From Entomortierella parvispora E1425 (Eukaryota; Fungi; Mortierellomycota), in assembly GCA_020891255.1 (NCBI GenBank), contig BQFW01000003.1, positions 1,302,001 through 1,366,000 on the forward strand: a stretch of 64,000 nucleotides of DNA. The letters are read 5' to 3'. Made by a program: the position numbers and the translations under genes. The notes below the pieces were generated by a model. It did not search any database, was not told the origin of the DNA, and worked only from the letters and a program-made list of their open reading frames with translations. Below are positions 17,166 to 64,000 of the stretch, piece by piece (position 1 is the stretch's first letter; the number at the start of each line of letters is the position of its first letter).

Positions 17166-17302
17166 CGAAGCACCAGTCATGATGCTGTTGACCACAGTGA
17201 GAACATGAGCTGCGAGAAGGGGTGAAGAGCGAGGCAATGGTCTGCTTAGCCGAGGGCTGGAAGGGCAAGTCCAAGGTCAAAGCAAAGCTGCCGTTCTGGA
17301 GC
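17166..17302 (-). pseudogene. Degenerate fragment copied from the giant repeat gene (source about 21265-21427)
   Basis: 17228-17302 matches 21353-21427 at 70/75 nt. It translates to LQNGSFALTLDLPFQPSAKQTIASL versus LQNGNIALTLDLPFQPAAKQIIASL. The match continues with a frameshift and a deletion of about 24 bp. Confidence 0.88.
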
Positions 17303-17311
17303 ATCCGTTGA

Positions 17312-17506
17312 AACGAACTGCATACAGGGACTATGATGGATGACGACTCGGATGCTTCAGGCGATGACTCGGAATATTTCTCTGACTCTGATTACTCTGG
17401 GGGTGAAGAGGGCATCAGCAATGAGGTCGACAAGCGTTTGGGTAGAGAAAAGAGAGACAGGATGAGGGTTTGGACTATTCGCGACGGAGTAACATTTGGT
17501 CTCTGA
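17312..17506 (+). mobile_element. Possible C-terminal remnant of a PIF/Harbinger-type transposase
   Basis: Short frame NELHTGTMMDDDSDASGDDSEYFSDSDYSGGEEGISNEVDKRLGREKRDRMRVW: an acidic tract followed by G-x-x-KR-x-R, convergent with the Myb-like gene. No catalytic DDE region is present. Confidence 0.3.
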
Positions 17507-18616
17507 GATCTTGCACTTGCTGCTGGAGATCTGTTTTCAGCTCGGCAGCCATATTATGATACCGTGTCCATGCCTGTTGAACGCGGGTCCATTCCTTGTC
17601 AATACGTTCCCTTTCTGCCTGTTTCTCTGTTTTGAAATCCATTTCACGTTGCTCCAGTGCCAGTTCCCGCTTGTGAAGCATCGCTGTGTGCTTAGCCTCG
17701 ATGTCATCTAGTCTCTTAATCAGAGCCTGCTCTCGATTTAACCATTCCTCCGATGCCGCTCCTAGTCTGTTGCCTCCTTTGCGACAGCTCCGCTCCAGTC
17801 TATTGAGAGTCTTCATAAGGTTCCGCCCAAGAATTGATGTGTCCTCTTTGCGTTGTTTGCCTTTTGATGCTGGTTGAGGTGCTATTGAGGAACAAATGTA
17901 ACAATGTAATGGTCAGTTCCTTTGCTCCATATCTCCACAACGATTCACCAGATAAACTCACGTATTGAACTGTCAGAATCAGAGCTCAGTGCACCTTCGA
18001 ACTCGTCGATAGTGCTGTCGTCCACCGCCGGAGATTCGTCGAGCTCGCTGTTCCTGACAATTTCTGGTCGTTGTGGCTGCTTTGGTGATGGCGCGTTTCT
18101 GTTCAGACTTCCGACATACACTTTGTGGAGCTTTTCATAGAAAGGGCACTCGTCCAACATGGCGTTCATTGGTGTAATTTCTTCTGTGTCTCCCCCGCCA
18201 GTGACAGTCGCCAACTTTCGAGCGGCATCATATTTTTTTTTGGTGTACGCGATTTTCGACTTCACTGCTACAGTGTCCCAGGTCGTGTTATGTTTTGAAT
18301 TGACGATCTCTGCAATCTCCTTGTGAAGGTCTGCTGGCCTGTGCCCAGCTGTTGGAGCCCCTCGATGTAGCCTCTCATGGTTGATCGGATCAGCGAGCCA
18401 ATCAATAAATGTGTCCATGCCTTCATTGGACCAGAACTTGCTCATTCCATCTGTTGATTCTGATGCAGCGCTTTTTCTTTTTTTTGCCGGCGGCTGAGAG
18501 CTTGGGTTTGATCCCGTGATCGAGGGATCTGGCGTCAGATCTACCACAGCAAAGGCTATAGGACGAGCTTGAATGTTACGTGGAGGCTTGGTCATCTCGG
18601 ATGGACCGACGTACAT
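17475..18616 (-). mobile_element. Myb/SANT-like (MADF/trihelix) DNA-binding protein with C-terminal coiled coil, resembling the PIF/Harbinger accessory ORF; exons 18616-17962, 17881-17475; about 353 aa
   Basis: NLS PPAKKRK; WSNEGMDTFIDWL..EIAEIVN..W..VKSKIAYTKKKY..TG-G..CPFYEKLH. An 80-bp intron (gtgagt..ctgac..tag) joins the two ORF-track pieces in frame. Confidence 0.65.
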
Positions 18617-20355: not shown

Positions 20356-23300
20356 CTAAATGGAGAAGCTGAGGTTCTTGAGGGCGCTGACAAGGATGGG
20401 CAACAGGTTCTGGAACACAGTCTGGGGTACACCGTTGAGGGCATTCTCCAACCAAGGCATGGGCTGACCGGCCGAGGTGCGCATATTGAACACAAACTTG
20501 AAATCGCCGGGATGGAACAAGAGAGCGTTGATGATGCTGAGGACTTGCAAGATGCTGAACTTCAAGGAGGCGTTCAAGGAGATCTGGTTGTTGCCTCCGC
20601 TCTGGTTGACGTTGTTCAAGTGAATAGGTCCTCCCAAGGAGGTGACCTCGACCACAGTCGTCGTCTGCTCCATGATCAAGATATCCACCGTACCCATGTC
20701 GACCTGAAGAGGACCGTGGTTGACAAACTGGGCGGCGAAATCCATGCCCAGGGGCGACAAGTGAAGCTGGAGCTCGTTCAAGGGGATGTTGATCGGCGAC
20801 CACAAGGTGATCGAAGGAGGCGTAATCGTCAATCCCTGGAGGGCCGTGAAAGCACCCAAGGTCACTCCACCGATGGTCACATCCTGCATGGCGTTCTTCC
20901 AGGTCAAGGCGTTGGGCAAGATGCCGTTCATGGCAGTGCCGAAAGCGGGCTCAATCACGTTGATGTTGGCACCCAAAGACCAAGGAGACTGCGCGAGGGA
21001 CATGCCAGTGGCCTGGATGGCTACGAAGGGCATGCCCTGGTATGCGGCCGAGAGCGAGATGCCAAACTTCATGTTCAGAGGAACCGTCAGAGGGATACCA
21101 GGGACAGCGATCGTAGCCTGGATACCGGTGGTGGTCAAGACGGTGTTCATGTCGGTGACGTGCAGAGGGTTATGGGCATTAATGTACGCCTGGGCCTTCT
21201 GGAAGACCGAGTTCAACTGAATCTCCAATCCAATCTTGGAAGCGATATCAAAGGCCTGGCTGGCGGAAGCACCAAAGATGATGCTGTTAACCACAATCGA
21301 GCCAGGGACCGTACCCACAGTCGAGAACATAAGCTGCGAGACAGGGGTCGAGAGCGAGGCAATGATCTGCTTGGCCGCGGGCTGGAAGGGCAAGTCCAAG
21401 GTCAAAGCAATGTTGCCGTTCTGGAGCTGGAAGTTGTTGATCGTGGGCGCGATGAAGCTAGCACCGCCGGCAGAGATCTGAAGTCCGACATAGGGCATCT
21501 CCACTGAGATCTTGGATCCAATACCACCGATCGAGGCAGCCAAGGCAATCGAAAGATCGTTGGCACCAGGGGCGCTGACATCTAACTGGCTGATAGAGAA
21601 GGCAGGGGCAGCAGTGGTGCTGTTGCCGCCAGTGATGCCACCGACGATGCCAGTCAACTTCTGGATATAAGGAGCCAAAGCAACCGAGACCTGGACCTTG
21701 TCCAAGATGTGGAAGACGCTTCCGGCAGAGCCTCCAAAGGCAATGTTGGAGACGACCAAGTTGACACTGTCAGAACCACCGTTGCCCATAACCTGGGAAG
21801 CGATGGCGGCGACCTTGGCCTGGATATCAGAACCACTGGCAAGGTTGACGAGCGAGTTGACCTTGAGGTCAATCTGGTTGTTACCGGAAGACAAGGTAAT
21901 GCCAGGGACGCTGATGGTGGCCAAGGGAGTGGTGTCCAAGAAGGCGCTGATGCTGACATAGTTCAACAACAACTGGGCGTTGAAAGAGTAGCCCAACAAG
22001 GCAACGTCGATATCGGCACCGATGCTAGGAGGGTTCTTCATGTTGATGTCAGCACTCTCGAGGGAAATGGCGTTCAAGAGCGAGGATGTGTTGGTGGCGC
22101 CGGTGGAAGGAACCAAGGACAAGATCTTGGAAATGGGGATGGGGATCTGGACACCCTGAAGGATCTTGAAGACGTTGCTCTGGCTGGGACCGAAACCAAT
22201 GCCCGAGATCATGATGGTACCCTGAGGAGCCTGACCAGCAACAACGGCGTTGACAAGGCCAGCGACCAAGGTCTCGGAAGCATCGGTCTCCAGAAGAGTG
22301 ATGTCGACATGGGTGCCAATAGTCAAGTCAGCACCGTTCTGGCCAAGGACCAGCTTGGGGATAGAAACTTGAACCAAAGGAACGCTGTTGATGGCGATAT
22401 CCAATCCGAGGTAACCAACGCTCAACTTGGCAGGCAAAGCCAGGTTCTTGATGTCGACGTTGGCATCAATACCAATGACGGGCGCCTGGTTCAAGTTGAT
22501 GGCAAGACCCGAAAGACCAATTCCGTTCAAGAGCGAACCAGCTCCGCTCAACATGCCACCGATCTTGGCAATGTAAGGAGTGACGTTGATGGGGATCACA
22601 ACGTCCTGGAGGATCGTGAAAAAGTTGGTGGAGGAAGCACCGAAGACAGCGCCAGAAATCTGGAGATCAGTCTCGGGCAAGGTCTGGTTGCTAAGAACGG
22701 CGCCGATCAAGCCCGAGATGGCCTTGGAAAGGTTGTCGCTGGCCATCAAAGTCAAGTCAACGTGGACCGTAAGGGCCAAGTCGTTGCCCTGGGGAGCCAT
22801 GGTGAAGGTGGGGATGGCAACAGAGGCCAAGGGGATGCCAGAGATGGCGGCGTTGGCACCGACATAGTTCAACTTGATCTGAGCAGGCAAGGAAACGTTG
22901 CGGACAAGGACCGAAGCATCGATACCGACAACCTGAGGAGCGTTCAAGTCCACAGCAAGGTTCGAGATCGAGATGCCGTTCAAGATCGAGCCCGAGCCAG
23001 CAAGGAGAGCAGGGATCTTGTTCAAGTAGGCAGTGACATCCAAAGGAATCTTGACGCCCTGCAAGAACGTGAAGACATCGGTAGAGGAACCTCCGAAGGC
23101 GGCACCAGAGATCACCAATTGGGTCGAAGGCAGAGCCTTGCCACCAACAATAGCCTGGACGAGTCCGTTGACAGTCTGGGACAAGGCAGCGCTCTCTTGG
23201 ATGGCCAAGTTGATGTGGAGGGCAATGTTGAGGTCACCATTGCTGGGAGTCATGCTGAACGATGGAATGCCAAGCTGGACAAGAGGGACCTGACCGATGG

Positions 23301-26300
23301 CAACGTTGGCGCCGACATAGTTGAGCTTGATCTGGGCGGGGAGGGTGATGTTCTTGATGGTAACGGCAGCATCGATACCAACGACCTGAGGAGCGTTCAA
23401 GTCCACAACCAATTGACTGACAGCAACTCTGTTCAACAACGAGCTCTCACCAGCGAGGAGGGCGGGGATCTTGTTGATGTAGGGAGCAACATTGATTGGG
23501 ATGGCAATGGCCTGCAAGATCGTGAACACGTTCGTGGGGGATCCACCAAAGACGGCACCAGAGATGACCAAGTTGGTCTCGGGTGTGGTCTGGTTGTTGA
23601 TGACAGCACCGACCAGGTTGGTGATGGCGGACGTAAGAGCATCGCTGGTCATGAGAGCAACATCAACGTGGGCAGTAATGGCCAAGGCACCGTTGGCGGG
23701 CTTGAGCGAGAACGAGGGAATGGAGACCTGGGCAAGACCGACCGTGTTGATGGCCAGGTTGACGCCGACATAGTTGAGCTTGATCTCGGCAGGAATGGTA
23801 ACGTTCTTGATGGCAATGGCGGCATCGATGCCGATGGTTTGGGGAGAGTTCAAGTCGACGACCATGGAACCAATATCCAAGCCAGCAAGGAGGTTGCCTC
23901 CAGCACCACCGGACAAGGCGCCATTGATCATGGCACCAATCTTTTGCAAGTAAGGAGCCAAGGCAATGTCGACCTTGATCTGGGACAAGATGTGGAAGAG
24001 ATGGTTGGGGTCACCACCAAAGACGGGATCGTAGATGACCAAGTCCGTAGGGGGCTTGACCTGGCCGGGGTAGAGCAGAGAGCCGACCAAGTTGGCAATC
24101 TGACCGCTGAGCTGAGGACCCTGCTGAACATTGACCAAAGCCTGGAAGTTGATCGAGAGCTCGTTGTTGGCGGAGCTCAAGGCCAAAGTGGGCAAGGTGA
24201 GATCGGCCAAGGGAACGGAGTCCAGACCCAAGGAAACACCGACGTAGTTGATGCTGATGTCGGCGGGCAAAGTCAAGTTCTTGATCAAGAGACCACCCTG
24301 AATGTTGATGATGGAGGGGCTGTTCAAGTCGACAACCAAGTTGGAGAGAGCAATGTTGTTCATGTTCAATCCACCGGCACCGGCCAACAACTGGTTGATA
24401 TAGGCCTTGGCCTTGGTAAGCAATGCGGGCAAGGCAACGGGGTATGAGATCAACGAGAAGGTTTGGATGTTGTCGGTAGTCGAGACACCAATCAAAGGCT
24501 TGGAAAGGACCAAGTTCTGGACGGGGGAAGTCGTGGTGTTGGACATGAAGTAGCCAACCAGCTTGGCAATATCGGTCTGGATCGCAGGGGTATCCTGGAC
24601 CGTGACCGAGGCCTTGACAGTCAAGGTCAACTTGTTGTTGGCGGTAGCAATGGTGATCGAGGGAACATCCACATGGGCGAGGGCGTCCGAGTCGAGGGCA
24701 AGATCGATACCAAAGTAACCAATGTTGACAGCCACAGGCAGAGAGAAGTTGTTGACAGACACAGTGGCACCCAACTCCATAACGGGAGCATTGTTCAAGT
24801 TGGCAGAGATGGCGCCAATCTCGACGCTGTTCAACAAGTTGCCAGCCATCTGGGTGAGGTTCATGCCCAACTTGGAGGTCAAGAGATCCAAGTTGGCCTT
24901 GTTCAAGACGTCCTTGGAGGGGATCGAGATGTCAATCTGGGACAAGAGATCAAAGTAGTCCGAGGGCGAAGCACCGATTCTCAAGTTGTGGACTGTCAAA
25001 GCCTCGGGGGTGTTTCCGAGCTGACCACCGAGGAGCTCACCGAGAAGAGTGGCAACCTTGGTCTGGGCAGCGACGGCGTTACTAAAGTACAAGTCAACCT
25101 CGGCCTGGAGGGTGTTGGCACCAGGGGACATGGCCAAGTTATCGACACCGACGTTCAAGATATCAACATTGTCCAATCCACCGCTGATACCAATGTAGGG
25201 AACAGAGAGGGAGATGGGGATGGGGTTGTTGAATTTGGCAGTAGCACCGATAGAAAGACCGGCATTGGGAACAGTGGCCAAAGAGATGTCGGCCACCGAG
25301 AGACCAAGCTGGGCCAAGGTGCTGTTGAGGAATCCACCGGGAAGAGAAGGAGCTGGGGAGGCAATAGAGTGTCATGGAGTGAAAGTCAGTATTTGATTGT
25401 AAAAAATAAATCAGTACAAAAAAAAAAAAAAAAAGAATGACGAAGTATCTTACCATTGCCGCCCAAAAGACCACCCAAAGGAAGGGAGATAGAAACCTGG
25501 GAAAGAGCCTCGATGAGATCGGATGAGGACTGACCGATAACAATGCCAGAGACGCCAACAGAGCTGGAAACGGGCTGGTGGGCAATGATGGCGTTGACCA
25601 AAGCAGCGACCTTTCCAGCAATGGCGGGACCAGTACCGACAGAGATAGCGATGCCGGCATCCATCTGGACAGTGCCACCGCCATAGTTCAAACCAGAAGT
25701 CAAGGAGACACCGGCCAGGTTGGCGCCATCCAAGCTCAATTGGAGACCCAAGTAACCAATGTTGGCGACAATGGGCAAGCCCAAGAACATGTCGAGGTTG
25801 ACACCGGCAGTGATCATGTTGTTGGGCAGGACAGCAATCGAGGCCTCGTGGATGGTAAGCTGAGCCAAAGAACCGACCTTGATGGCCACAGCGGTGGGCG
25901 CGATGGAGACACTGGTCTCAGCCATGACGGTCTGGAGCAACTGCGCGAGGTCAATGTGGCCTGTGATGACATCCGAGATAGGGAGAGCAACATCGACGCC
26001 GTTCAAGGTGTTGATGGCATCGCTAGGACTCATACCCAAGGCCAGGTTGGAGACACCAGCCGTGATATCCAAGCTTCCACCTGATGATGTCAAAGCACTG
26101 ACCAATTGGGCAACAGTGGGTGGGATCTGAGGGCTGGGTTCCGTGAAGACAATACCGACACCGACCGAGATGTCCACATTTCCTGATCCAGTACCTACCA
26201 AATCAGCCAAGAAAAGTTGGCCGAGCTGGTTGCCGTTCAAGTTGATGTCCAAGGCAAAGTAAGGAATGTTCAAGTCCAACTCGAAGGGCAAGGGGAGGGT

Positions 26301-27689
26301 TATCTTGGGCGAGATCAACAAAGTGTGTCCGGGAGCAGTGGAGACGGTAAGACCCTGGATATAAGTCATCAGGGAAGGACCAGTACCCTCTCCGAGCTTG
26401 CTGATGTCGATGGGAAGGTAAGGGGTGATATATCCGAGAATTAATTGTTCAATGGCGACGGTGCTGACGTTCAAGAGGGGCAGGTTGATGTCCAATTCGC
26501 TGAACAACGAGTTCAAAAGGTAGCCAGTAGCGCTCATGTTGCTTGGGGTACCGAAAGAGAAGTTGCCAATGTTGACAACCTGGTTCAACGTGCCTAAGTG
26601 AAAAAAGAGAGTCCATAAATGTTAAAAGACCGATACTTTCCGACTGGTGACCACCACCCACTGCAGTCAGTCATATTTCTACATACCTCCGAGGAAGTCG
26701 CCTACAAGGGCGCCAAGCTGAGCAGAAGCCTCGGCATCGTTGTTGAACTCGAGGTTGACAAGGGTCTCGGCAGTCATCTCGCCGGGAGCGAGGTGCAAGT
26801 CCTGAATGCCAACAGTGACAATACGAGTGCCGTTCAGACCAAGATCCACCTGAAGATAAGGAATATCCAAGGCAACGTTCAAGGGGTTGTTCCAGGAGAA
26901 GCCCACACCAGCCGTCAACACGGCACCAGTCTGGGTCTTGACTATGACCTTGTTGAGTGTTGGCATTGTGAAGTTGATGAGGGGGTTCATCAAACCTCCA
27001 AAGCCAAAGACTGGGGGCGTGCCGGCGTTAGCAGTGACGTTCGTGGGCTGGATGGGTCCAGCAGGAGCAAACTGCACAGGGATCTGGATGGGGGCCATGC
27101 CCAATGGGTTGCCACTAGCAGTAATATCCTGAATACTAATCACAGGGGGAGCACCGCTGGGAGTGACACCTCCAAAGAGAGATGTGACCACATTGTTGAT
27201 AGACGTCTTCAAAGCAGGGACGGTGTTGCCGTCAGCGATGTCAATGGTGGCATTGGCGGCCAGTGGGCCAATTCCAGCACTCAAGGTAATATTTGTGGTG
27301 GTGATGTTGGCCAAGGACATGCCATCGAGAAGGATTTTCACACCAATTGAACCAAGAGCGATGTTCATGGGTCCAAGAGGGTTTTGCAACGAAGAGTTGA
27401 CCGAAACAACGACCTGAGTAGGGGCTGTGATAAAGAGGCCAGCCTGGGTGAAGTTCATGAGGCCGGGAACAAGGTACTTGTCCATCATGTTCGGGGGCTT
27501 GGGCACCATGGATGAGAGTCCACCGAGGATAATGGCTCCAGGGGAATCCACAGCGGCACCAAAGGTGATGGCGGCGTCAGCAGCTGGAGCAATGGTTGAT
27601 CCCAAAAGGGCCAAGCCAGCTACTCCTGCCATTGCCAGGAACGATCCCATTTTGGCGACCTTATTGTTGGATGAATTTGATCGTGTCAT
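20356..27689 (-). CDS. Giant secreted repeat protein, 2379 aa, about 15 LEA_2/DUF3712-like beta-rich units; exons 27689-26687, 26593-25454, 25352-20356
   Basis: Three long ORFs join in frame through gtatgt..tag and gtaaga..cag introns (7140 nt). Signal peptide ends ..APAADA|AITF. Core repeats recur at an exact 453-bp period (22405, 22858, 23311, 23764). NP-x-I-x-LG / LNYVG / ISGA-FG motifs and many N-glycosylation sequons. Confidence 0.88.
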
Positions 27690-30600: not shown

Positions 30601-31019
30601 TCTGTCAGTTTTACCAATGCATTATCGATGCAGACCTCCCCAACCTTTGCGATGGTGGATGCAGCGGAGCATTGGAGTGTTTTGATTACAGAGAGATCAT
30701 CCGTGCATTGAGATGGTCGGAATGTCGCACTCGCACTTTCCCACCATGCTTCTCTTTTTCTCGAGTGGCCAGCGAGCATGGCCCCCAGTGCGAACTTCGA
30801 CACAAAGACCCTGCCACGAAGATCACTAGCATCGTTAGTCGCTCTCCCCAAGAATCAGGCCACTTTTTGTTTGTAGCACAGGCATCGTTGTGCATTCATG
30901 AAAATTAACCTTGCAGAATGCCGAATTGGTCACGTGGCTTGATCATGTGACGATGTAGAGCACAGCGCAGTCTGACTGTCAAGATGCAGGCATGCAGGCA
31001 ATGCATTTCTTTGCATTCT

Positions 31020-32501
31020 ATGGCAGATTCGACCGCAACGACAGCAGGAGATCCTATAGCTGGAGCACCAACGCCGGCTCTGTCGAGTGGATCAGGGTCA
31101 GTGTCGCCGCTCAATATCGAGGAAGTCCTAGTTGAGATCGTGTCTTACTTGGACAGACAGTCTCTTCACAGTTGCGTAACGGTTTCAAAGAAGTTTTATC
31201 GAGCCGCGATCCGGAGTCTCTGGAAGGTTGTGCATTGGAAGGGAACCACGGCAGACAATTGTTTTCTCCCAGAATTCATCCGTTATGGTCACTACACCGT
31301 TGAACTCCAGGATAACTTCAATGCTGACCTGGAGTTGATCGCTCGGATATGCACTAATCTGAGAGAACTTCGCCTCGCATGGACTCCGCCCACGGACGAA
31401 TCTCTGCAGAGGATTTTGGAGAGTTCCCCCAAGATCTCGCATCTCTATCTATATTGCGGAAGGGCGTTGACTCACCAGGCTTTCCAGAGTATAAGTCAGC
31501 TGGCAGGACTGAGGCGACTGGACTTGAGGAATATGATCAAGATGACCGATGGGGCACTTATTACGCTGCTTCGGTCCTGTCCACTGCTGGAGCATTTAAA
31601 CCTCGAGGATGTTCTACTGGAAAACATTTTTCTGGACGACCTTGGAGACAAGCCTTTACGACTGCGGATCTTGGGGTTGGCACGTTCATATCTGCCAGGG
31701 ACATTCGTCAAAAATCTTCTGAGCGTCTCTCCAGAGATCAAAGAGGTCTCGTTGGCTAGAAATACTCGAACGATTCTTACAAAGGAGGATATTCTACCGC
31801 TGCAGGACATTCTTTCTCAGTTGACATATCTAAACCTAGATTCTTGCAGATTAATCGAGAGTGACGCGATGGAGACCCTCTTTGGAACGTGCCCCAATCT
31901 TGAGCGAGTCAACATTGGCAGTACTATGGCCGACGACCGTTGCTTGAATGCCCTCTCGACGAATTGCTGCAGACTTCAGAACCTCAACCTGTCTTGGTGC
32001 AATCATATTACGGACGAAGGCGTGATCAACTTTTTGACAACCTGCACGACGTTGAAGCTCTTGGATATTCGTACGCTAGGAACAATCTCTTCAGCAATAT
32101 TTCACCCGAAAAAACTCTGGGCCTGCCGAGATCTGGAGACTCTCAACATCACAGGTGTTTACATGGCGAGACCCAGCATTGCAGCGTTTGGAGGTGGCAC
32201 TGCAGCAAATCATGCTCGCATGTTTGAGCAATTGGGCCGCCTGCGATCGTTGCGGGACTTGGTTCTTGGAGGGTCGACCCTAACCTTGGAGCTGAGCTCA
32301 GGCATGTCTAAGCTGGGCGAACTGGAGGATCTGGAATCGTTCAGGATCGCATCTCTGGAGGTTATTTTGGCCGAGGACGAGATCCGGTGGATTGTCGACT
32401 CTTGGCCAAAGTTGAAACGCATCAAGTTTGAGAGCGGGACATTGCCTCCACCCTGGAAGCGGTACTTTCGACATCAGCGGCCACAACTGATACTAGGGTA
32501 G
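31020..32501 (+). CDS. F-box / RNI-like leucine-rich repeat protein, single exon
   Basis: F-box-like PLNIEEVLVEIVSYLDRQSLHSCVTVSKKFYRAAIRSLW, then LRRs (CPLLEHLNL, CPNLERVNI, LQNLNLSWCNHITDEG, WACRDLETLNI). Confidence 0.88.
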   Translation: MADSTATTAGDPIAGAPTPALSSGSGSVSPLNIEEVLVEIVSYLDRQSLHSCVTVSKKFYRAAIRSLWKVVHWKGTTADNCFLPEFIRYGHYTVELQDNFNADLELIARICTNLRELRLAWTPPTDESLQRILESSPKISHLYLYCGRALTHQAFQSISQLAGLRRLDLRNMIKMTDGALITLLRSCPLLEHLNLEDVLLENIFLDDLGDKPLRLRILGLARSYLPGTFVKNLLSVSPEIKEVSLARNTRTILTKEDILPLQDILSQLTYLNLDSCRLIESDAMETLFGTCPNLERVNIGSTMADDRCLNALSTNCCRLQNLNLSWCNHITDEGVINFLTTCTTLKLLDIRTLGTISSAIFHPKKLWACRDLETLNITGVYMARPSIAAFGGGTAANHARMFEQLGRLRSLRDLVLGGSTLTLELSSGMSKLGELEDLESFRIASLEVILAEDEIRWIVDSWPKLKRIKFESGTLPPPWKRYFRHQRPQLILG

Positions 32502-57365: not shown

Positions 57366-60300
57366 CTACTGGTACTCAGGATAGAGTGCCCGGATGGCCT
57401 TCTCCATCCACGCTACATATGCCATTCCAGTCTCCATTGCTGGAGCATGCTCGCCCACTAGACTTGCCAAGCTCTCGTACAATTCATTATCTGGCATGTT
57501 CGCCAACAATGCGCGGCGCTCGCTCGGTGACAGCGAAGCCTCTGGCTCGCTTCTCTTCCCAGAGTCGATGGACGCCAAGGGAGAGTGGTTCTCGCCAGCG
57601 AGACTCCGCTTCGTGAGGCCTGCAAAAGAATAGTCGATTTGGATAAAGGCCGGTACGTTGTTTTGAGAGTATTCAATCGTGGTATCGTATCCAACGCCCA
57701 AGGCACCGCCGACGACCAGCTCCAGCTCAGATTCAAAGTCAACGTCCACAGTGCCCCCGGTCAGCACGGCCAAGTTCTTGGGGATGAACTGCGTCACCAA
57801 GAAGAGGGCAAATTGATAGCCTGTAGGACATTGCAGTGAGACAACAGGCGATACAGTATCGACATAGGGGTTCACCGCAAAGGGTATGTGAGCGTGATCC
57901 ACGCCTCCAAAGTAATTGCCTGCGTCCAAAAAGAATTGAAGTGCCAGTTTTCAAGGTCAGTTATGACTCTCGCAAGTGTAGACATCCTTCCAACAATTAC
58001 TTTAAATTTTCGCTGAATTTTTTTTTTTACCTTCCCAGTAGACCGATGCAGTCATGGTCTCTATCCAGATAACAGTCGCCAATGGGTTTGCAGCCGTTAC
58101 TTGAAGGGGAAGTAGGCGAGGGCCCAAGACTTGTCCCAAAGTGGGCGCGCTTGTACCAGCCTTGATCAGTTGGGGTGCTGGGATCATGCCGGGAAGGGTC
58201 GTCGTCATAGTCAGGGCCTTGAGAGTAGGAAGGATGGACGCAATGTTACTTGTATTTTCGTCGCCATAGATAGACGTCGAAAAACTTTCCCCGGACACAA
58301 AGCCAGATAAAAATTGCTCTCCATAGGTTTGGTTGGTCGGTTGGAACAAGATGGTGGCTGGCACAATGTTCATGCCAGGCTTCATAACCAAGTTGGCGAT
58401 GGTCGCTGTGCCAATATACCCGTCTGTACCGTTGACGACACACTTAAGCTGTAGCACAATTTGCCCAAGGGTCACCGAGAAAATAGACGGGTTGTCGAGA
58501 CCCACGTTGCCAGTAATTGGAATATTCTCGGTAGTTCCGCCAATGACCAAAATGTCTGAAACGGCCGGCGTTTGGGAAGAAAAGCTGATGCCTTTCAGGG
58601 ACAGGGTGGTATTGAGGGGCACGGTCAGATGTACGGTACCCAACGAGGTGACGGCCACGCCTTGAGCACTTCCGGTAATCTCGATAGAGGCCTCGGCGTC
58701 CAGGGCAATCGCATTCATGAAATTGATGAACGCGCTTTGGTCATAAATATTCATGGGTGAGGGGGGGACCGAGAAAACAACCTTGTTGTTTGGCATATCA
58801 GAGGCAGTTGTGTTCCAAATAGCAGAGTCGAGCTGGACAAAGGACACGTTTTGGAAAGCCATCTTGAAAGTCGTATTCGCAAGTTCGGTGATGTTGATTG
58901 TGATGTTGAAGGGGATCTTGAAGTCTGCCGAGACGGAGTCCGAGTTCACGGTGGGGCTCCAAGGATTGGCCTCGCTCATGACCAAGCTCATGTCGTTGAT
59001 GGAAATGTTCTTGATCACGTCCATAGGAGTCACCGCTTGAAGAGGGACAGTAAGTGTCGTCGATGTAATGGCATTGGTGAGCCATGAGATGGCATGGACG
59101 CCATCGGGGAAGACGGAAACACCTTTTCCAGTGGCCAAGGTTGGGATATTAGCAAGGTAATTGGACATGAGTAAGGAGAGTTCGGCTTCATGGACCTGGT
59201 CGGTCTGCTTGTACAACTGACCCTCCAGATTCAAGGCCATGTCCTGTCCACCGATGAGACTAACATTTTTGGCGACAACTCGGCCGAGGTAGGCAGTCTC
59301 AAAGTACAAGTCCAGTGTGATGGTGCCGAGGACCATACCAATTGGAGATGGGTTTGGAATTGTAGCCTGGATGGAAACCAAGGCGCCGTTTCCGTCCGGG
59401 GCATCCGCCGGGAGATTAAACCCCAAAATCTTGATATTTGCAAAGTTGTCGAGTCCTATTCAATACGTGAAGAGTGTCAGTCAAAGGCGCACTTCATTCT
59501 CTCTACAGACTCCACGGTCGAACAGCGGTAGCACAATTGTGGAGGAGCTGTCTTTGGGTCTGTGCTGAGTTATAGTTGTTTGGCAACTGTTGACATCACA
59601 ATGGCTCGTTGGAGCGAGAAGTAGAGAGCGAGCCGAGAAGATAACCCCAGCGAAGAGGAACGCTTCTTTAGGTTTGATTGGAGATGTGCTGCTTACCATT
59701 CATGTTCAACTTCTTGTTGATGTTCAAGTTTTTAATGGTTTGGCCTACCACCTTTACCGTTGCGACACTTGACATAGTCCAAACGAATCCGTCAGCCGAT
59801 AGCTATCAACAAGGGAACAGCCCAGAACGATAGCAAGTGAGCGTTGTCTCCTCTGTCTCTAAAAACTGAAATTCCATCCAGGGTGCAGTTCACTTTGACG
59901 GACGACCAAAAAAAAAAAAAAAAAAAAAAAACACTTCGGCTCATATCACAGCAGCAGGGTCACCAAAAAAAAGGACAATCGGGCAAGACTTCTTGTTAAA
60001 CATGGTCAACTCAGGTTCGGGTTGTTTTGTAGATATCTGCAATTTCTCGTCCAGCCCTGCCTCTAGTAAATTTGCTGACTCAAATCCTTTGATCCGTTCC
60101 ACGAATCCAATGGTCTATTGGTGTTATACTTTTGCCCCAGCTATAGTATTGAGCGCCTGCAACTGCCTCAACATTAATGGCGTCTGTCGGATTACACGTT
60201 TCCTTCGGCTCCTCGTCCTCATCCTAAACAGAACACAAGAAAGCGGGCCAGTGCCTGTTTTTCCTGTATGTGCTACCATATCGACCAAAATCCATGCTCT

Positions 60301-61240
60301 GTAATAGTATTTTCCGAACCTCCTGAAACTTTTTTTCATTCTTCCATACGGCAAAGAGTCCATGGCCATCCAAACGGCTCTAAAGAGTGAACCGAGAAGC
60401 AACAAGGATGTGGAGAAACCGTTCTTGTTTTCAAACTCCTCTCTTTTTCCTAGAAACGATGCATGCAGCTGACATGGCCCAAGCTGCCATGGCGTTGTGG
60501 AGACCAAATCTAAATATTGTCCGAAGATAGAATCTCGCTCACCCTCCCTCTCGCACTTGTACTCCACTGCCTTGCTTCTTCTCTCCCTCTTGTCAGTTGT
60601 AATAAAGAAGGCCAAGCAAAAAAAGGAGGGGCTCAAAACTCACCATCACTTTGGCAAACTCGCCAAAGGCGGTCGTATTCTGGATCTGAAGGGTCGTTGT
60701 CTGAAGGATATCACCCTTGCCCTTCTTGACATACACCGTTGCGAGGCTCATGTTGCCAAGTAGCACACCGTCCCAGGAGACATCCACTGTCTTTGTGAAT
60801 TCCATCGAAGCCGAGAAGAGCTTGGGGATCCCACTGACAGTAGCCAGGACAGAGACGGTCATTTCTGTCTCTCCAGGGTTCGTCATATTCAGCTGGACCA
60901 CATTCATCCCTGCTTTGTTCATCATCGATTGTGCAATTGCGGGCAAGGCAAACTTGAGGAACAAGGGGATGAAGATGGCCAAGAATACGACCGTGGCGAT
61001 CAGACACCCGACAATGTATCTCTTGCGACGGTAGATGGGCTTGCGGTAGGGCTTGTGAGCAGAGTTGTATTCGTGGAAGGATTCGTATTCCTCAAACTCG
61101 TGTTCTTCACCCTCTCCTTTGTGGAGGTTGTGAGAATTGTCTCTGGTGACATCTTGATAATCGGTTTCCTCGTCTCTGTAGGGTAGGTCTTCTGTTGAAG
61201 ACGCAAGCTTTTCGCGCATCGAATCAAGAGATGATGGCAT
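57366..61240 (-). CDS. Tag1/DUF3712-like type II membrane protein with LEA_2-type lumenal repeats; exons 61240-60644, 59802-59697, 59455-58031, 57919-57366; 893 aa
   Basis: Acidic N-terminus, RRKRY then transmembrane IVGCLIATVVFLAIFIPLFL, LSADGFVWTM, GFNLPADAP, IPNPSPIGMVLGTITL, LDNPSIFSVTLG. The hand-built splice model keeps the frame (2682 nt). Confidence 0.85.
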
Positions 61241-62477
61241 GACGAAATTAAGAATTCCTGATGTTGAAATCAGACTTTTTGTGAAAAGAGTGGAGAGAAG
61301 GTGAGGGCAAAAGCCTTCAGCGTGGCCAGAAGGAGAGGGGGAAGTGATGGGGGCAGAAGTAGAGGGAAATGAGGGTGAGGTTGGACCTGAGGACGAAACA
61401 GAAGAGGGAAGAAAAAGAAAAAGAAAAACAACGAACTGAGAAATGACACTGATGAGCCTGTCCGTGCCAGGCACTTACAAGGTCATGCTGATGCATACAC
61501 AATGGGTACCTTGGAGAACAAACAACGAGGCTGGAAGTGGCGCCGTTCCTTGCTATCCAGTGGAGCAATTGAAAAAAATGAAGTCAAGGCGACCATTTGG
61601 GGCCGTGCGAAGTCGAAAAAATCTTCCTCTCCCACATTGAACGGGAAAAAACAACAGAGAGACGGGCAAACAAGAGCGCTAACAAGGTCCAAGTGTCCTT
61701 TCTTTTCGAGCCAGCATTTGGTCTGGTTACACTCAAAGTGTCCAGTCAAACGCCCAACACCCACGGGCACACAATTGGTTTCGTCTCTGAACAACAAACA
61801 GGTCAGGTTGACAATAATGATACGGCACACAAAAATTGGGCCATATATTCGACTCCGGAGATAGAGGAAGTAACAAGGAGACATTCGGGGCAGGCATGGT
61901 CGTGTGTGTGCCCACATTGGCAGGCAATAATGATATCGGTACACAATAATGATATCGACGACATTGCAGTTTGGGCAAACGAGTTGTGCACTGTTCAGCC
62001 TTGTTCTTTTGTTTGTGGAGAAATCAAGAACCAGCGACAAGGCAGGGATGCTCAACAGGGTGAGAGCAGGACACATGTTTAAATCACTGCACGAATGAGA
62101 TGAATAGTGCACACTACACAAAACGTCAGTTGTGCGGCTCATAGTACTTTCTACGGGCTAAAGGACACCTAGACGAATACAAAAAAACAAGGGTTACTTT
62201 GTTCCTTGCTTCCTGTCGACCGGAACGGGTCGCACACGGGAGCGAAATGAAAAATAAGCCAGATCGACAGTTGTCGCGGTTCGGACGCGTCCCTGCCGCG
62301 TGTTTCAGGTCATACAGATGTATGAAAACGATGAGTCCGTGTTTGAGCCCGTTATCGTACATGCCTCGTTCTTTTTCTTTCATTCATGACACTTTTCATT
62401 ATTATTTCTTCAAAGAGGAAGGAGACAGGGTCTATCTGGCTATCAGTTATAAGATTGGTGGGGTTTGTGCGTACTAA

Positions 62478-64000
62478 TTACTGGTTCAGCTCAGCAACAT
62501 ACTTCTGGGCCTCAGTAGGGTAAGCGGCAAACAAGGCCTCCTTCAACCACTGGACATACTCCAATCCACTCTCCGGTGCAGGCTCTGGTCTCAGCTCCAA
62601 GGCCATGCTCTCTTCTGACCGTCTTTTCAATCCATTCGCAAAGCTCATATCCAACTTCAAGAATGCAGGGACAGCCGTTTGGTTATAGGCAATCGTCGAA
62701 GCGTAACCTGCGCCTGCTGGACCACCGACAGTCACTCCGATGCTGGACGTCATGTCCACATCCACAATTGCACCCGTCAGAACACCCAAGTTGGCTGGCA
62801 AGAATGTTGAGATCATAAACATTCCAAACTGGAAACCGGTAGGAGCTTGAAGGGTCAAGGAAGGCGAAGGCGACGTGGCGCCCACAGCAATGGAGAATGG
62901 GGTGTTGGCCTCAATGGAGCCAAAGAAGTTCCCCTGCCAGAACACGTTAGCCGCGATCGTGTTAAGGGAAAGCGAGGTCTGAAGAGGGTTCAGGACCGAG
63001 ACGGTCAAAGGAATCTGGCGGTTTCCAACCACACTGCCCAGAGAAGGCGCACCGTTACCGCTGACAATCAAACGAGGTGCAGGGATGATACCGGGGACCT
63101 TGACCTTCAAGGCCAAGGCCTCGGCAACGGGCTGCATCGATGTGATGTTTGTCGAATCAGATGCACCGGTAATAACGCAGTCAAATATCGTTCCTGCAAC
63201 AAATTCGGAGAAGAAGGTATTTCGGAAAGCTGCATCTGTAGGATGGAAAAGGACCTGAGTTGTAATAGTGGTCTGACCGGGACCAAACTTGAGGTTGGGA
63301 ACAATGACATCACCCATCAATCCAGACAAACCGCCGGCAGTGCCGCTGATCTTCAAGTTCATGGGACCAGCGTCCACCGAGAAGATTGAAGGGTTGTTGA
63401 TGCCCACATTGGCGTTCAGGGTCACGTACTCGGTCGAGCCTCCAACGACAGTAACATTTGTGATCGTGGGGGAGTTGACTGCGAATCCGATACCGTTCAA
63501 AGCGATTGTGGAGGTGAAGGGAACCTTCAGGCTAACAACACCCATGGGGGTGGTAGCAACAGAGTCAGCACTTCCTTTGATATCGAATCCAGACTTGGTG
63601 TTCTGAACAACATCCACCAAGAAGGCCTGGAAGGCATCATGAGCGTCTGCATTGACGTTCAAAGGCGAAGGAGGAAGGGTAAAGACAATCTTGTTGTTGG
63701 GCATGTCAGACTCGGTCTGGTTCCAGACAGCAGTGGTCAAGTCGGCAAGAGCAGTTCCGTTGTAGATCAGAGTCATGGTTGCATTTGCTAGTTGGGTGAT
63801 GTTGAGCGAGATGTTGAAGGGCAACTTGAACGTGGCCGAAACGACGTTCGAGTTGGCAATGGGGGCCCATGGAGCATCAGGGCTGATGACAAGGCCCATA
63901 TCCTGGATATCCATGCCCTGAATGACGTTCAAAGGAGTGGGAGAGATCAAGGGAACAGTCATGGTCATGGCCTGGACAGCCGAGGTCAACCAAGAGACAC
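62478..64000 (-). CDS. Tandem Tag1/DUF3712-like paralog, 5' part outside the window
   Basis: Colinear with the 57366-61240 protein (VSATFKLPFNISLNITQL vs VSADFKIPFNITINITEL; SDMPNNK; GINNPSIFSV; PGIIPAPRLI; APTGFQF). Confidence 0.88.
   Translation of the reverse strand, partial: VSWLTSAVQAMTMTVPLISPTPLNVIQGMDIQDMGLVISPDAPWAPIANSNVVSATFKLPFNISLNITQLANATMTLIYNGTALADLTTAVWNQTESDMPNNKIVFTLPPSPLNVNADAHDAFQAFLVDVVQNTKSGFDIKGSADSVATTPMGVVSLKVPFTSTIALNGIGFAVNSPTITNVTVVGGSTEYVTLNANVGINNPSIFSVDAGPMNLKISGTAGGLSGLMGDVIVPNLKFGPGQTTITTQVLFHPTDAAFRNTFFSEFVAGTIFDCVITGASDSTNITSMQPVAEALALKVKVPGIIPAPRLIVSGNGAPSLGSVVGNRQIPLTVSVLNPLQTSLSLNTIAANVFWQGNFFGSIEANTPFSIAVGATSPSPSLTLQAPTGFQFGMFMISTFLPANLGVLTGAIVDVDMTSSIGVTVGGPAGAGYASTIAYNQTAVPAFLKLDMSFANGLKRRSEESMALELRPEPAPESGLEYVQWLKEALFAAYPTEAQKYVAELNQ

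Follow-up and report, generated by a model that had tools for sequence, protein, structure and literature searches.

EMPS_02469 of Entomortierella parvispora, a protein of fifteen tandem LEA-2-like units that may form an exoplasmic rod of defined length

In this work, a stretch of 64,000 nucleotides from Entomortierella parvispora E1425 (assembly GCA_020891255.1, contig BQFW01000003.1, positions 1,302,001 to 1,366,000 of the forward strand; hereafter the window) was analysed with regard to one gene, EMPS_02469, whose product of 2379 amino acids (aa) is an array of 15 repeat units. The units belong to the LEA-2/DUF3712 (Tag1) superfamily, and the comparisons support their placement there as a distinct subfamily. 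To judge from its sequence relatives, EMPS_02469 is one member of a large, functionally uncharacterised family of giant proteins of early-diverging fungi. We hypothesize that it is a rigid, length-defined rod on the exoplasmic side, which would act as a scaffold or spacer, and we put the chances of this reading at about even.

Gene model and repeat units

Three minus-strand open stretches (26679..27689, 25386..26588 and 20356..25317), joined via two canonical GT..AG introns, give a gene of three exons at 27689..20356 with 7140 coding nucleotides, that is 2379 codons and the stop. The translations of exons 1, 2 and 3 match the GenBank protein EMPS_02469 (P0001, 2379 aa) with 100% identity at residues 1, 336 and 716. 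Because all three sit in the database protein with the predicted junction residues present, the gene model is right. Searches were made exon by exon, and whole-protein figures, such as the mass of about 239 kDa, were taken from the identical database record. EMPS_02469 is an expressed-type, strongly conserved fungal gene, and it encodes a real protein.

The preliminary description of this DNA had reported about 15 units, with an exact 453-bp period over three consecutive ones, and the repeat analysis confirms it. The BLOSUM autocorrelation of exon 3 has peaks at lags of 151 aa (about 11 standard deviations, SD) and 302 aa (about 10 SD) and a weak one at 453 aa (about 4 SD), and local identity between repeats is 40-70% across roughly residues 475-950 of this exon. 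A unit hidden Markov model (HMM), seeded on four 151-aa units and then iterated, resolved 14 clear units and one degenerate C-terminal unit; in the genome scan the unit profile gave 15 matches within the gene, a count that is partly so by construction. Units 8-11 measure exactly 151 aa (453 bp) apiece, and units 8-10 share 53-58% of their residues. Tandem Repeats Finder reported no 453-bp array in the DNA, because the copies are only 61-64% identical at that level. The features of the gene are as follows.

20356..27689, minus strand: whole gene EMPS_02469, three exons, identical to the database protein
26687..27689, minus strand: exon 1 (residues 1-334 and the first base of codon 335), GT donor at 26686
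26594..26686, minus strand: intron 1, 93 nt, GTATGT...TAG, canonical GT..AG
25454..26593, minus strand: exon 2 (residues 335-715), translation found in EMPS_02469
25353..25453, minus strand: intron 2, 101 nt, GTAAGA...CAG, with a T17 run, canonical GT..AG
20356..25352, minus strand: exon 3 (residues 715-2379 and stop), translation found in EMPS_02469
27570..27689, minus strand: N-terminal signal-peptide-like segment (residues 1-40), top Kyte-Doolittle window of the protein (1.79), small-x-small pattern kept in orthologues
26967..27458, minus strand: unit 1 (residues 78-241), iterated HMM and genome scan
26364..26966, minus strand: unit 2 (residues 242-411), split by intron 1, HMM and genome scan, sub-threshold LEA_2 match at residues 267-318
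25455..26363, minus strand: units 3 and 4 (residues 412-714), iterated HMM and genome scan
23890..25317, minus strand: units 5, 6 and 7 (residues 727-1202), iterated HMM, sub-threshold LEA_2 match at residues 911-977
22078..23889, minus strand: units 8-11 (residues 1203-1806), 453 bp or 151 aa each, autocorrelation and HMM, units 8-10 modelled
21169..22077, minus strand: units 12 and 13 (residues 1807-2109), iterated HMM
20359..21168, minus strand: unit 14, degenerate unit 15 and conserved C-terminal amphipathic helix (residues 2110-2379), HMM, modelled

Superfamily membership

Pfam scans of the exon pieces, the whole protein and single units returned nothing beyond two partial, sub-threshold LEA_2 matches, which are in register with units 2 and 6. 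The DUF3712 model (PF12505) did not match EMPS_02469 at E up to 10, nor did the Chorein_N, VPS13, AsmA and DUF490-type families, and none of the 69 PF12505 matches of the genome scan fell in the gene. When the 14-unit alignment was run as a profile against PDB sequences, nothing meaningful came back, and the same narrow alignment reached only 1.5% in hhalign against six DUF3712 proteins of this genome. The profile was then broadened to 1,932 units from 216 relatives. In this form it matched all eight DUF3712 loci of the genome by HMMER (E 1.7e-10 to 9e-4), with no unrelated open reading frame (ORF) comparable, and hhalign aligned it with DUF3712 at 86.9% (E 4.1e-6 over 98 columns). The register of that alignment is shifted from the PF12505 model, as described by Levine (bioRxiv 10.1101/2021.03.12.435176). 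Furthermore, the unit profile (A1) matched four DUF3712 genes genome-wide, and the nearest clusters in a language-model protein atlas were all DUF3712, LEA-2_4, LEA-2L_5 or Tag1_C. EMPS_02469 and about 15 homologues also carry, as a putative assignment, the precomputed label PF26150.1 (LEA-2_4, the Tag1-like fourth LEA-2-like domain). The earlier claim of LEA_2/DUF3712-like units on the secretory pathway is thus upheld by the broadened-profile comparisons, together with the seven-strand-plus-helix topology and the signal-like N-terminus described below.

The architecture itself, of which the preliminary description knew no characterised example, is not unique. Levine described DUF3712 proteins of more than 4000 aa and, in silico, the Ustilago maydis protein UM15053 with 15 gapless LEA-2 domains (bioRxiv 10.1101/2021.03.12.435176), and our HMMER search found 281 clusters of relatives. 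The gapless fungal array of 15 LEA-2 domains is therefore already known, and EMPS_02469 adds a member of a separate subfamily. Like the UM15053-type proteins, it is a gapless array of seven-strand-plus-helix units in an experimentally uncharacterised secretory-pathway protein of a fungus, and its units show the same register offset from the Pfam DUF3712 model as Levine's multi-LEA-2 proteins. It differs from the latter in having no PF12505 match, in its units, which are longer (151 aa) and end in additional short helices, in its place in a separate giant subfamily, and in a signal-peptide-like N-terminus instead of a transmembrane (TM) helix. In the literature on DUF3712 or LEA-2 bridges, only Levine's preprint and the TMEM106B papers were found, and multi-LEA-2 arrays are there neither treated as bridges nor characterised.

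Predicted fold and the question of a lipid conduit

AlphaFold2 models were made for units 8-10, from an alignment of 55 homologues (predicted local distance difference test, pLDDT, 79.4; predicted template modelling score, pTM, 0.62), and for the last 270 residues, which hold two units (pLDDT 84.8, pTM 0.79); secondary structure was assigned by DSSP. The well-formed units of both models have seven strands, some of 12-16 residues, with a 15-residue amphipathic helix between strands 5 and 6, which is the topology reported for the LEA-2-like lumenal domain of TMEM106B (PMC10409496). Short helices close each unit, and the next begins without a linker; domains joined in this way would make a rod that is stiff and fixed in length. 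In the model, the preliminary description is borne out for the amphipathic helix and the 'ISGA-FG' strand, whereas a short beta-bridge with coil stands in place of its 'VFTILQ helix'. In the family at large, the residues of the strands alternate very regularly, hydrophobic positions (at least 0.8) taking turns with small or polar ones (at most 0.2). One hydrophobic strand face is explained by the core of an ordinary sandwich, which needs it, and the pattern is also compatible with a splayed groove, because this would be lined by the same residues.

By comparing the multi-unit models with the PDB in Foldseek, only generic tandem immunoglobulin (Ig)-like chains were found (template modelling score below 0.25). 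The top rigid-body match for two independent units was 3BUT, the LEA-2 domain of Af_0446 of Archaeoglobus fulgidus, which covered nearly the whole domain. The closest solved structure is thus a LEA-2 domain. The Foldseek and VIA-align listings contained no repeating beta-groove (RBG), AsmA, TamB or Lpt structure, although a missing match is weak evidence. 3BUT derives from a type II protein of two domains. TMEM106B is absent among the matches listed for the models. The lumenal domain of TMEM106B is single, disulfide-stabilised and glycosylated, whereas the EMPS_02469 units have no Cys.

It had been proposed that the stacked units form one continuous hydrophobic groove, and thereby an exoplasmic bridge-like lipid conduit convergent with VPS13/AsmA. 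Lipid transfer by LEA-2 proteins was also proposed by Levine, and the 3BUT crystal has a 27-Å hydrophobic groove with an unmodelled lipid-like ligand (bioRxiv 10.1101/2021.03.12.435176). That this structure is the best match for two of our models speaks for the conduit, as do the extreme hydrophobicity and low charge of EMPS_02469 and a gapless, rigid array conserved in length. VPS13, ATG2, Csf1, AsmA, TamB and YhdP are likewise very long, rigid, repetitive and beta-rich, with a high aliphatic content, and an N-terminal TM anchor comparable to that of AsmA/Csf1-type bridges is present in most sampled ancestral-type relatives of EMPS_02469. However, one end of the groove in 3BUT is closed, and no groove is seen in the plant LEA-2 nuclear magnetic resonance structures (bioRxiv 10.1101/2021.03.12.435176) or in the crystal of the TMEM106B lumenal domain, the one eukaryotic domain of this LEA-2-like lumenal kind with a crystal structure (PMC10409496). 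The bridge-like lipid transfer proteins have a continuous beta-groove and are cytosolic, whereas EMPS_02469 consists of discrete Ig-like sandwiches, presumably exoplasmic, whose single hydrophobic strand face fits a closed core. None of the Pfam, Foldseek and VIA-align searches gave sequence or fold similarity to bridge-like lipid transfer proteins, and a second-membrane or C-terminal membrane-binding module is not evident. The mature Mortierella protein would have no anchor at either end, and it lacks one for a second membrane; fungi are not known to have a further membrane beyond the plasma membrane. A conduit is therefore unlikely. If 15 LEA-2 grooves did line up into one channel, the proteins would represent a class of exoplasmic bridge-like transporters made of sandwich domains, independent of VPS13/AsmA, anchored in chytrids and released in the oleaginous Mortierella, which we consider very unlikely.

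Protein ends and topology

The N-terminus of EMPS_02469 consists of a short, poorly conserved Ser/Asn tail, K/R, about 20 hydrophobic residues, Pro and a small-x-small pattern (Pro-Ala-Ala-Asp-Ala ahead of the likely cleavage point). This corresponds to the cleavable-looking signal peptide noticed at the outset, and about 60 orthologues share the pattern. Several orthologue models begin at an internal Met (Met14 in EMPS_02469), and such a start would leave a signal peptide of classical form, about 26 residues long. Cleavage of the signal is thus likely, as far as sequence patterns can tell. The absence of any other TM or GPI (glycosylphosphatidylinositol) anchor, also claimed earlier, is supported by the Kyte-Doolittle scan, in which no further window of EMPS_02469 stood out as a TM helix, and by the folded C-terminal helix. 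An internal TM segment was rejected, as the window that ranks second in hydrophobicity falls on a domain helix (pLDDT above 90), and so was a GPI anchor, as the C-terminal 25 residues are modelled as a conserved amphipathic helix packed on the last unit. The Mortierella alpina versions (P0049, P0050 and P0052) have a tail rich in Ser, Pro, Thr and Ala in place of this helix.

Most sampled chytrid and blastoclad members carry a charged N-terminal tail of 50-200 residues followed by a strong TM helix (Kyte-Doolittle 2.6-3.5), a type II anchor that places the repeats on the exoplasmic side. In EMPS_02469, by contrast, the tail is short, the hydrophobic stretch is weaker and the small-x-small pattern is conserved, and the Mortierella clade as a whole lacks the charged tail, has the weaker stretch (1.79) and shows a share of charged residues about half that of its relatives. 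In most giant relatives (P0072-P0103, chytrids and Blastocladiomycota) a motif of the RYCGG[KR]L type stands directly before the TM anchor, which could be a palmitoylation or sorting signal.

These relatives bear on a further explanation, in which EMPS_02469 keeps an uncleaved type II anchor and resides in the vacuolar or endolysosomal lumen, where the rod would have the role of tether or sensor that has been suggested for yeast Tag1. The type II vacuolar Tag1 of Saccharomyces cerevisiae shares the superfamily with EMPS_02469, and in both the repeats would be lumenal or exoplasmic; however, Tag1 has three domains, a cytosolic tail and a TM anchor, whereas EMPS_02469 has 15 domains, a signal that is probably cleaved, and no Tag1_C match. 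The clear type II anchors, cytosolic tails and RYCGG-type juxtamembrane motif of most sampled chytrid and blastoclad relatives are in line with a Tag1-like protein, and for a signal peptide the hydrophobic stretch, at about 20 residues, is a long one. Yet the cytosolic tail is lost in the Mortierella clade, the hydrophobicity of the stretch is far under that of the anchored relatives, the Pro and small-x-small pattern is conserved, and the internal-Met starts give a signal peptide of classical length, so that a vacuolar rod of this kind seems quite improbable.

Distribution and composition of the family

The HMMER library search with the unit profile gave its 281 clusters at E <= 0.001, of which 108 were at E <= 1e-30. 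The largest relatives reach 4767 aa, with up to 26 matched stretches. All named relatives that were looked up are Mortierellomycota, chytrids (Irineochytrium, Phlyctochytrium, Polyrhizophydium, Cladochytrium, Entophlyctis and Geranomyces) or Blastocladiomycota (Blastocladiella and Sorochytrium). Among the short matches, ten were scanned against Pfam and gave no family, and the four of these ten that were looked up are fragments or partial gene models of giant proteins or unnamed metagenomic pieces. Among the full-length Mortierellomycota proteins, 31 from many genera have exactly 15 units each (2320-2408 aa). Mortierellomycota also have a second paralogue class, of 12-13 units, whose genes in Linnemannia are often neighbours of the 15-unit ones. 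In several Linnemannia genomes, genes for proteins of about 2380 aa and about 2040 aa have consecutive locus tags on the same contig (P0023/P0055, P0011/P0059, P0046/P0058, P0017/P0062 and P0045/P0067), and these look like conserved tandem pairs of the two classes; within the 64,000-nt window there is no such pair. The E. parvispora genome has two 15-unit paralogues, EMPS_02469 and EMPS_03695 (P0022; 2408 aa; contig 5, 661582-668701, plus strand), which are 71% identical over exon 3.

EMPS_02469 contains no Cys, only 6 Arg and 8% charged residues, with a grand average of hydropathy (GRAVY) of +0.57 and an isoelectric point of 4.4; chytrid relatives have a GRAVY of 0.1-0.47 and 12-20% charged residues. 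Such a composition, more extreme than in the chytrids, could suit a hydrophobic coat or adhesin on the surface of hyphae or spores, in a lineage without hydrophobins. The membrane anchor is lost in the Mortierella clade, and tandem Ig-like rods are common as adhesin stalks. Against a coat, the outward strand positions are small or polar and not greasy, no tip or ligand-binding domain is recognisable, and there is no sign of self-assembly, which makes this explanation improbable.

Membership in the LEA-2 superfamily also raises the possibility of a LEA-type protectant, that is, a LEA-2 polymer in the wall or matrix that would stabilise the interface of plasma membrane and wall during drying or freezing. 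In plants, LEA-2 proteins (LEA14, for example) are folded and hydrophobic and have links to stress; Mortierellomycota live in soil, and the gene has been both duplicated and strongly conserved. However, the family is abundant in aquatic chytrids and Blastocladiomycota too, and a bulk protectant needs no strictly conserved number of units. A protectant role is accordingly rather unlikely.

A scaffold or spacer of defined length

The gene model, the anatomy of the repeats, their fold class and superfamily, the distribution of the family and the constancy of its unit number are shown by the analyses above, whereas the rod as a scaffold or spacer is a proposal, to which we now return. After cleavage of its signal peptide, EMPS_02469 would lie on the exoplasmic side, either between the plasma membrane and the cell wall or in the extracellular matrix, and its 15 LEA-2-like domains would serve as a structural scaffold or spacer of defined length. 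Depending on how the units stack, the rod would be roughly 40-75 nm long. Single units may hold a hydrophobic ligand, while the chain would not be one continuous lipid tunnel, and the uncharged, Cys-free and aliphatic-rich composition would suit a non-ionic matrix environment. Rigidity and fixed length are suggested by the pTM of the three-unit and two-unit models (0.62 and 0.79), the lack of linkers and the 31 proteins with exactly 15 units. The conserved signal-like N-terminus, and the type II topology with exoplasmic repeats in most sampled chytrid and blastoclad relatives, point to the secretory route.

Several points weigh against this proposal. The location of the protein and the cleavage of its signal are predictions, the scaffold role is the default reading, and every member of the family is experimentally uncharacterised. 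It could also be that the N-terminal stretch of about 20 hydrophobic residues stays uncleaved as a signal anchor; the rod would then be held on a membrane, possibly that of the vacuole as in yeast Tag1. For a soluble protein, a GRAVY of +0.57 is unusual and may hint at binding of lipids or hydrophobic surfaces. N-glycosylation sequons are not enriched, with 29 found and 26 ± 4.5 expected, which is the chance level. Moreover, the Pfam LEA_2 match (PF03168) stays below threshold (19.1 bits, E 0.0019, against a cut-off of 25.4).

Genomic surroundings

The neighbours of EMPS_02469 are F-box/leucine-rich repeat (LRR) and Myb/SANT-like genes (30984-32501, plus strand, and 17945-18616, minus strand) and unknown ORFs, with no evident functional link to it, and a clue to its function from the gene neighbourhood was accordingly rejected. 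Opposite the gene, at 20512-25440 on the plus strand, there are antisense open frames of 331, 912 and 325 aa without family matches, which are most likely a by-product of its skewed composition (GC skew +0.17). About 3 kb past the 3' end, a fragment of 39 codons at 17218-17334 (minus strand), with stops on both sides, is 69% identical to residues 2015-2051 in unit 13 and looks like the relic of a partial duplication. Canonical DUF3712 genes lie at the far end of the window, at 58005-59459 and 62481-63998 (both minus strand; PF12505 75 and 38 bits, one weak Tag1_C match), with a weaker one at 60596-61474 (minus strand). More DUF3712 copies occur 80-90 kb further along the same contig, at 1446131-1456164, and PF12505 matches in the genome number at least 69.

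Significance

The tandem LEA-2/DUF3712 proteins rank with the largest secretory proteins of fungi that are still uncharacterised, and their superfamily, which includes Tag1, Vac7 and TMEM106B, still lacks an agreed molecular function. Whether LEA-2 arrays act as structural rulers or as lipid carriers could be tested cleanly in the subfamily of EMPS_02469, given its strict unit number (15, or 12-13 in the second class), its high identity across genera and its extremely charge-poor, Cys-free composition. The family also holds a natural contrast between the anchored forms of chytrids and the released forms of Mortierella. An answer to the question of ruler or carrier would bear on the debated lipid-transfer hypothesis for human TMEM106B.

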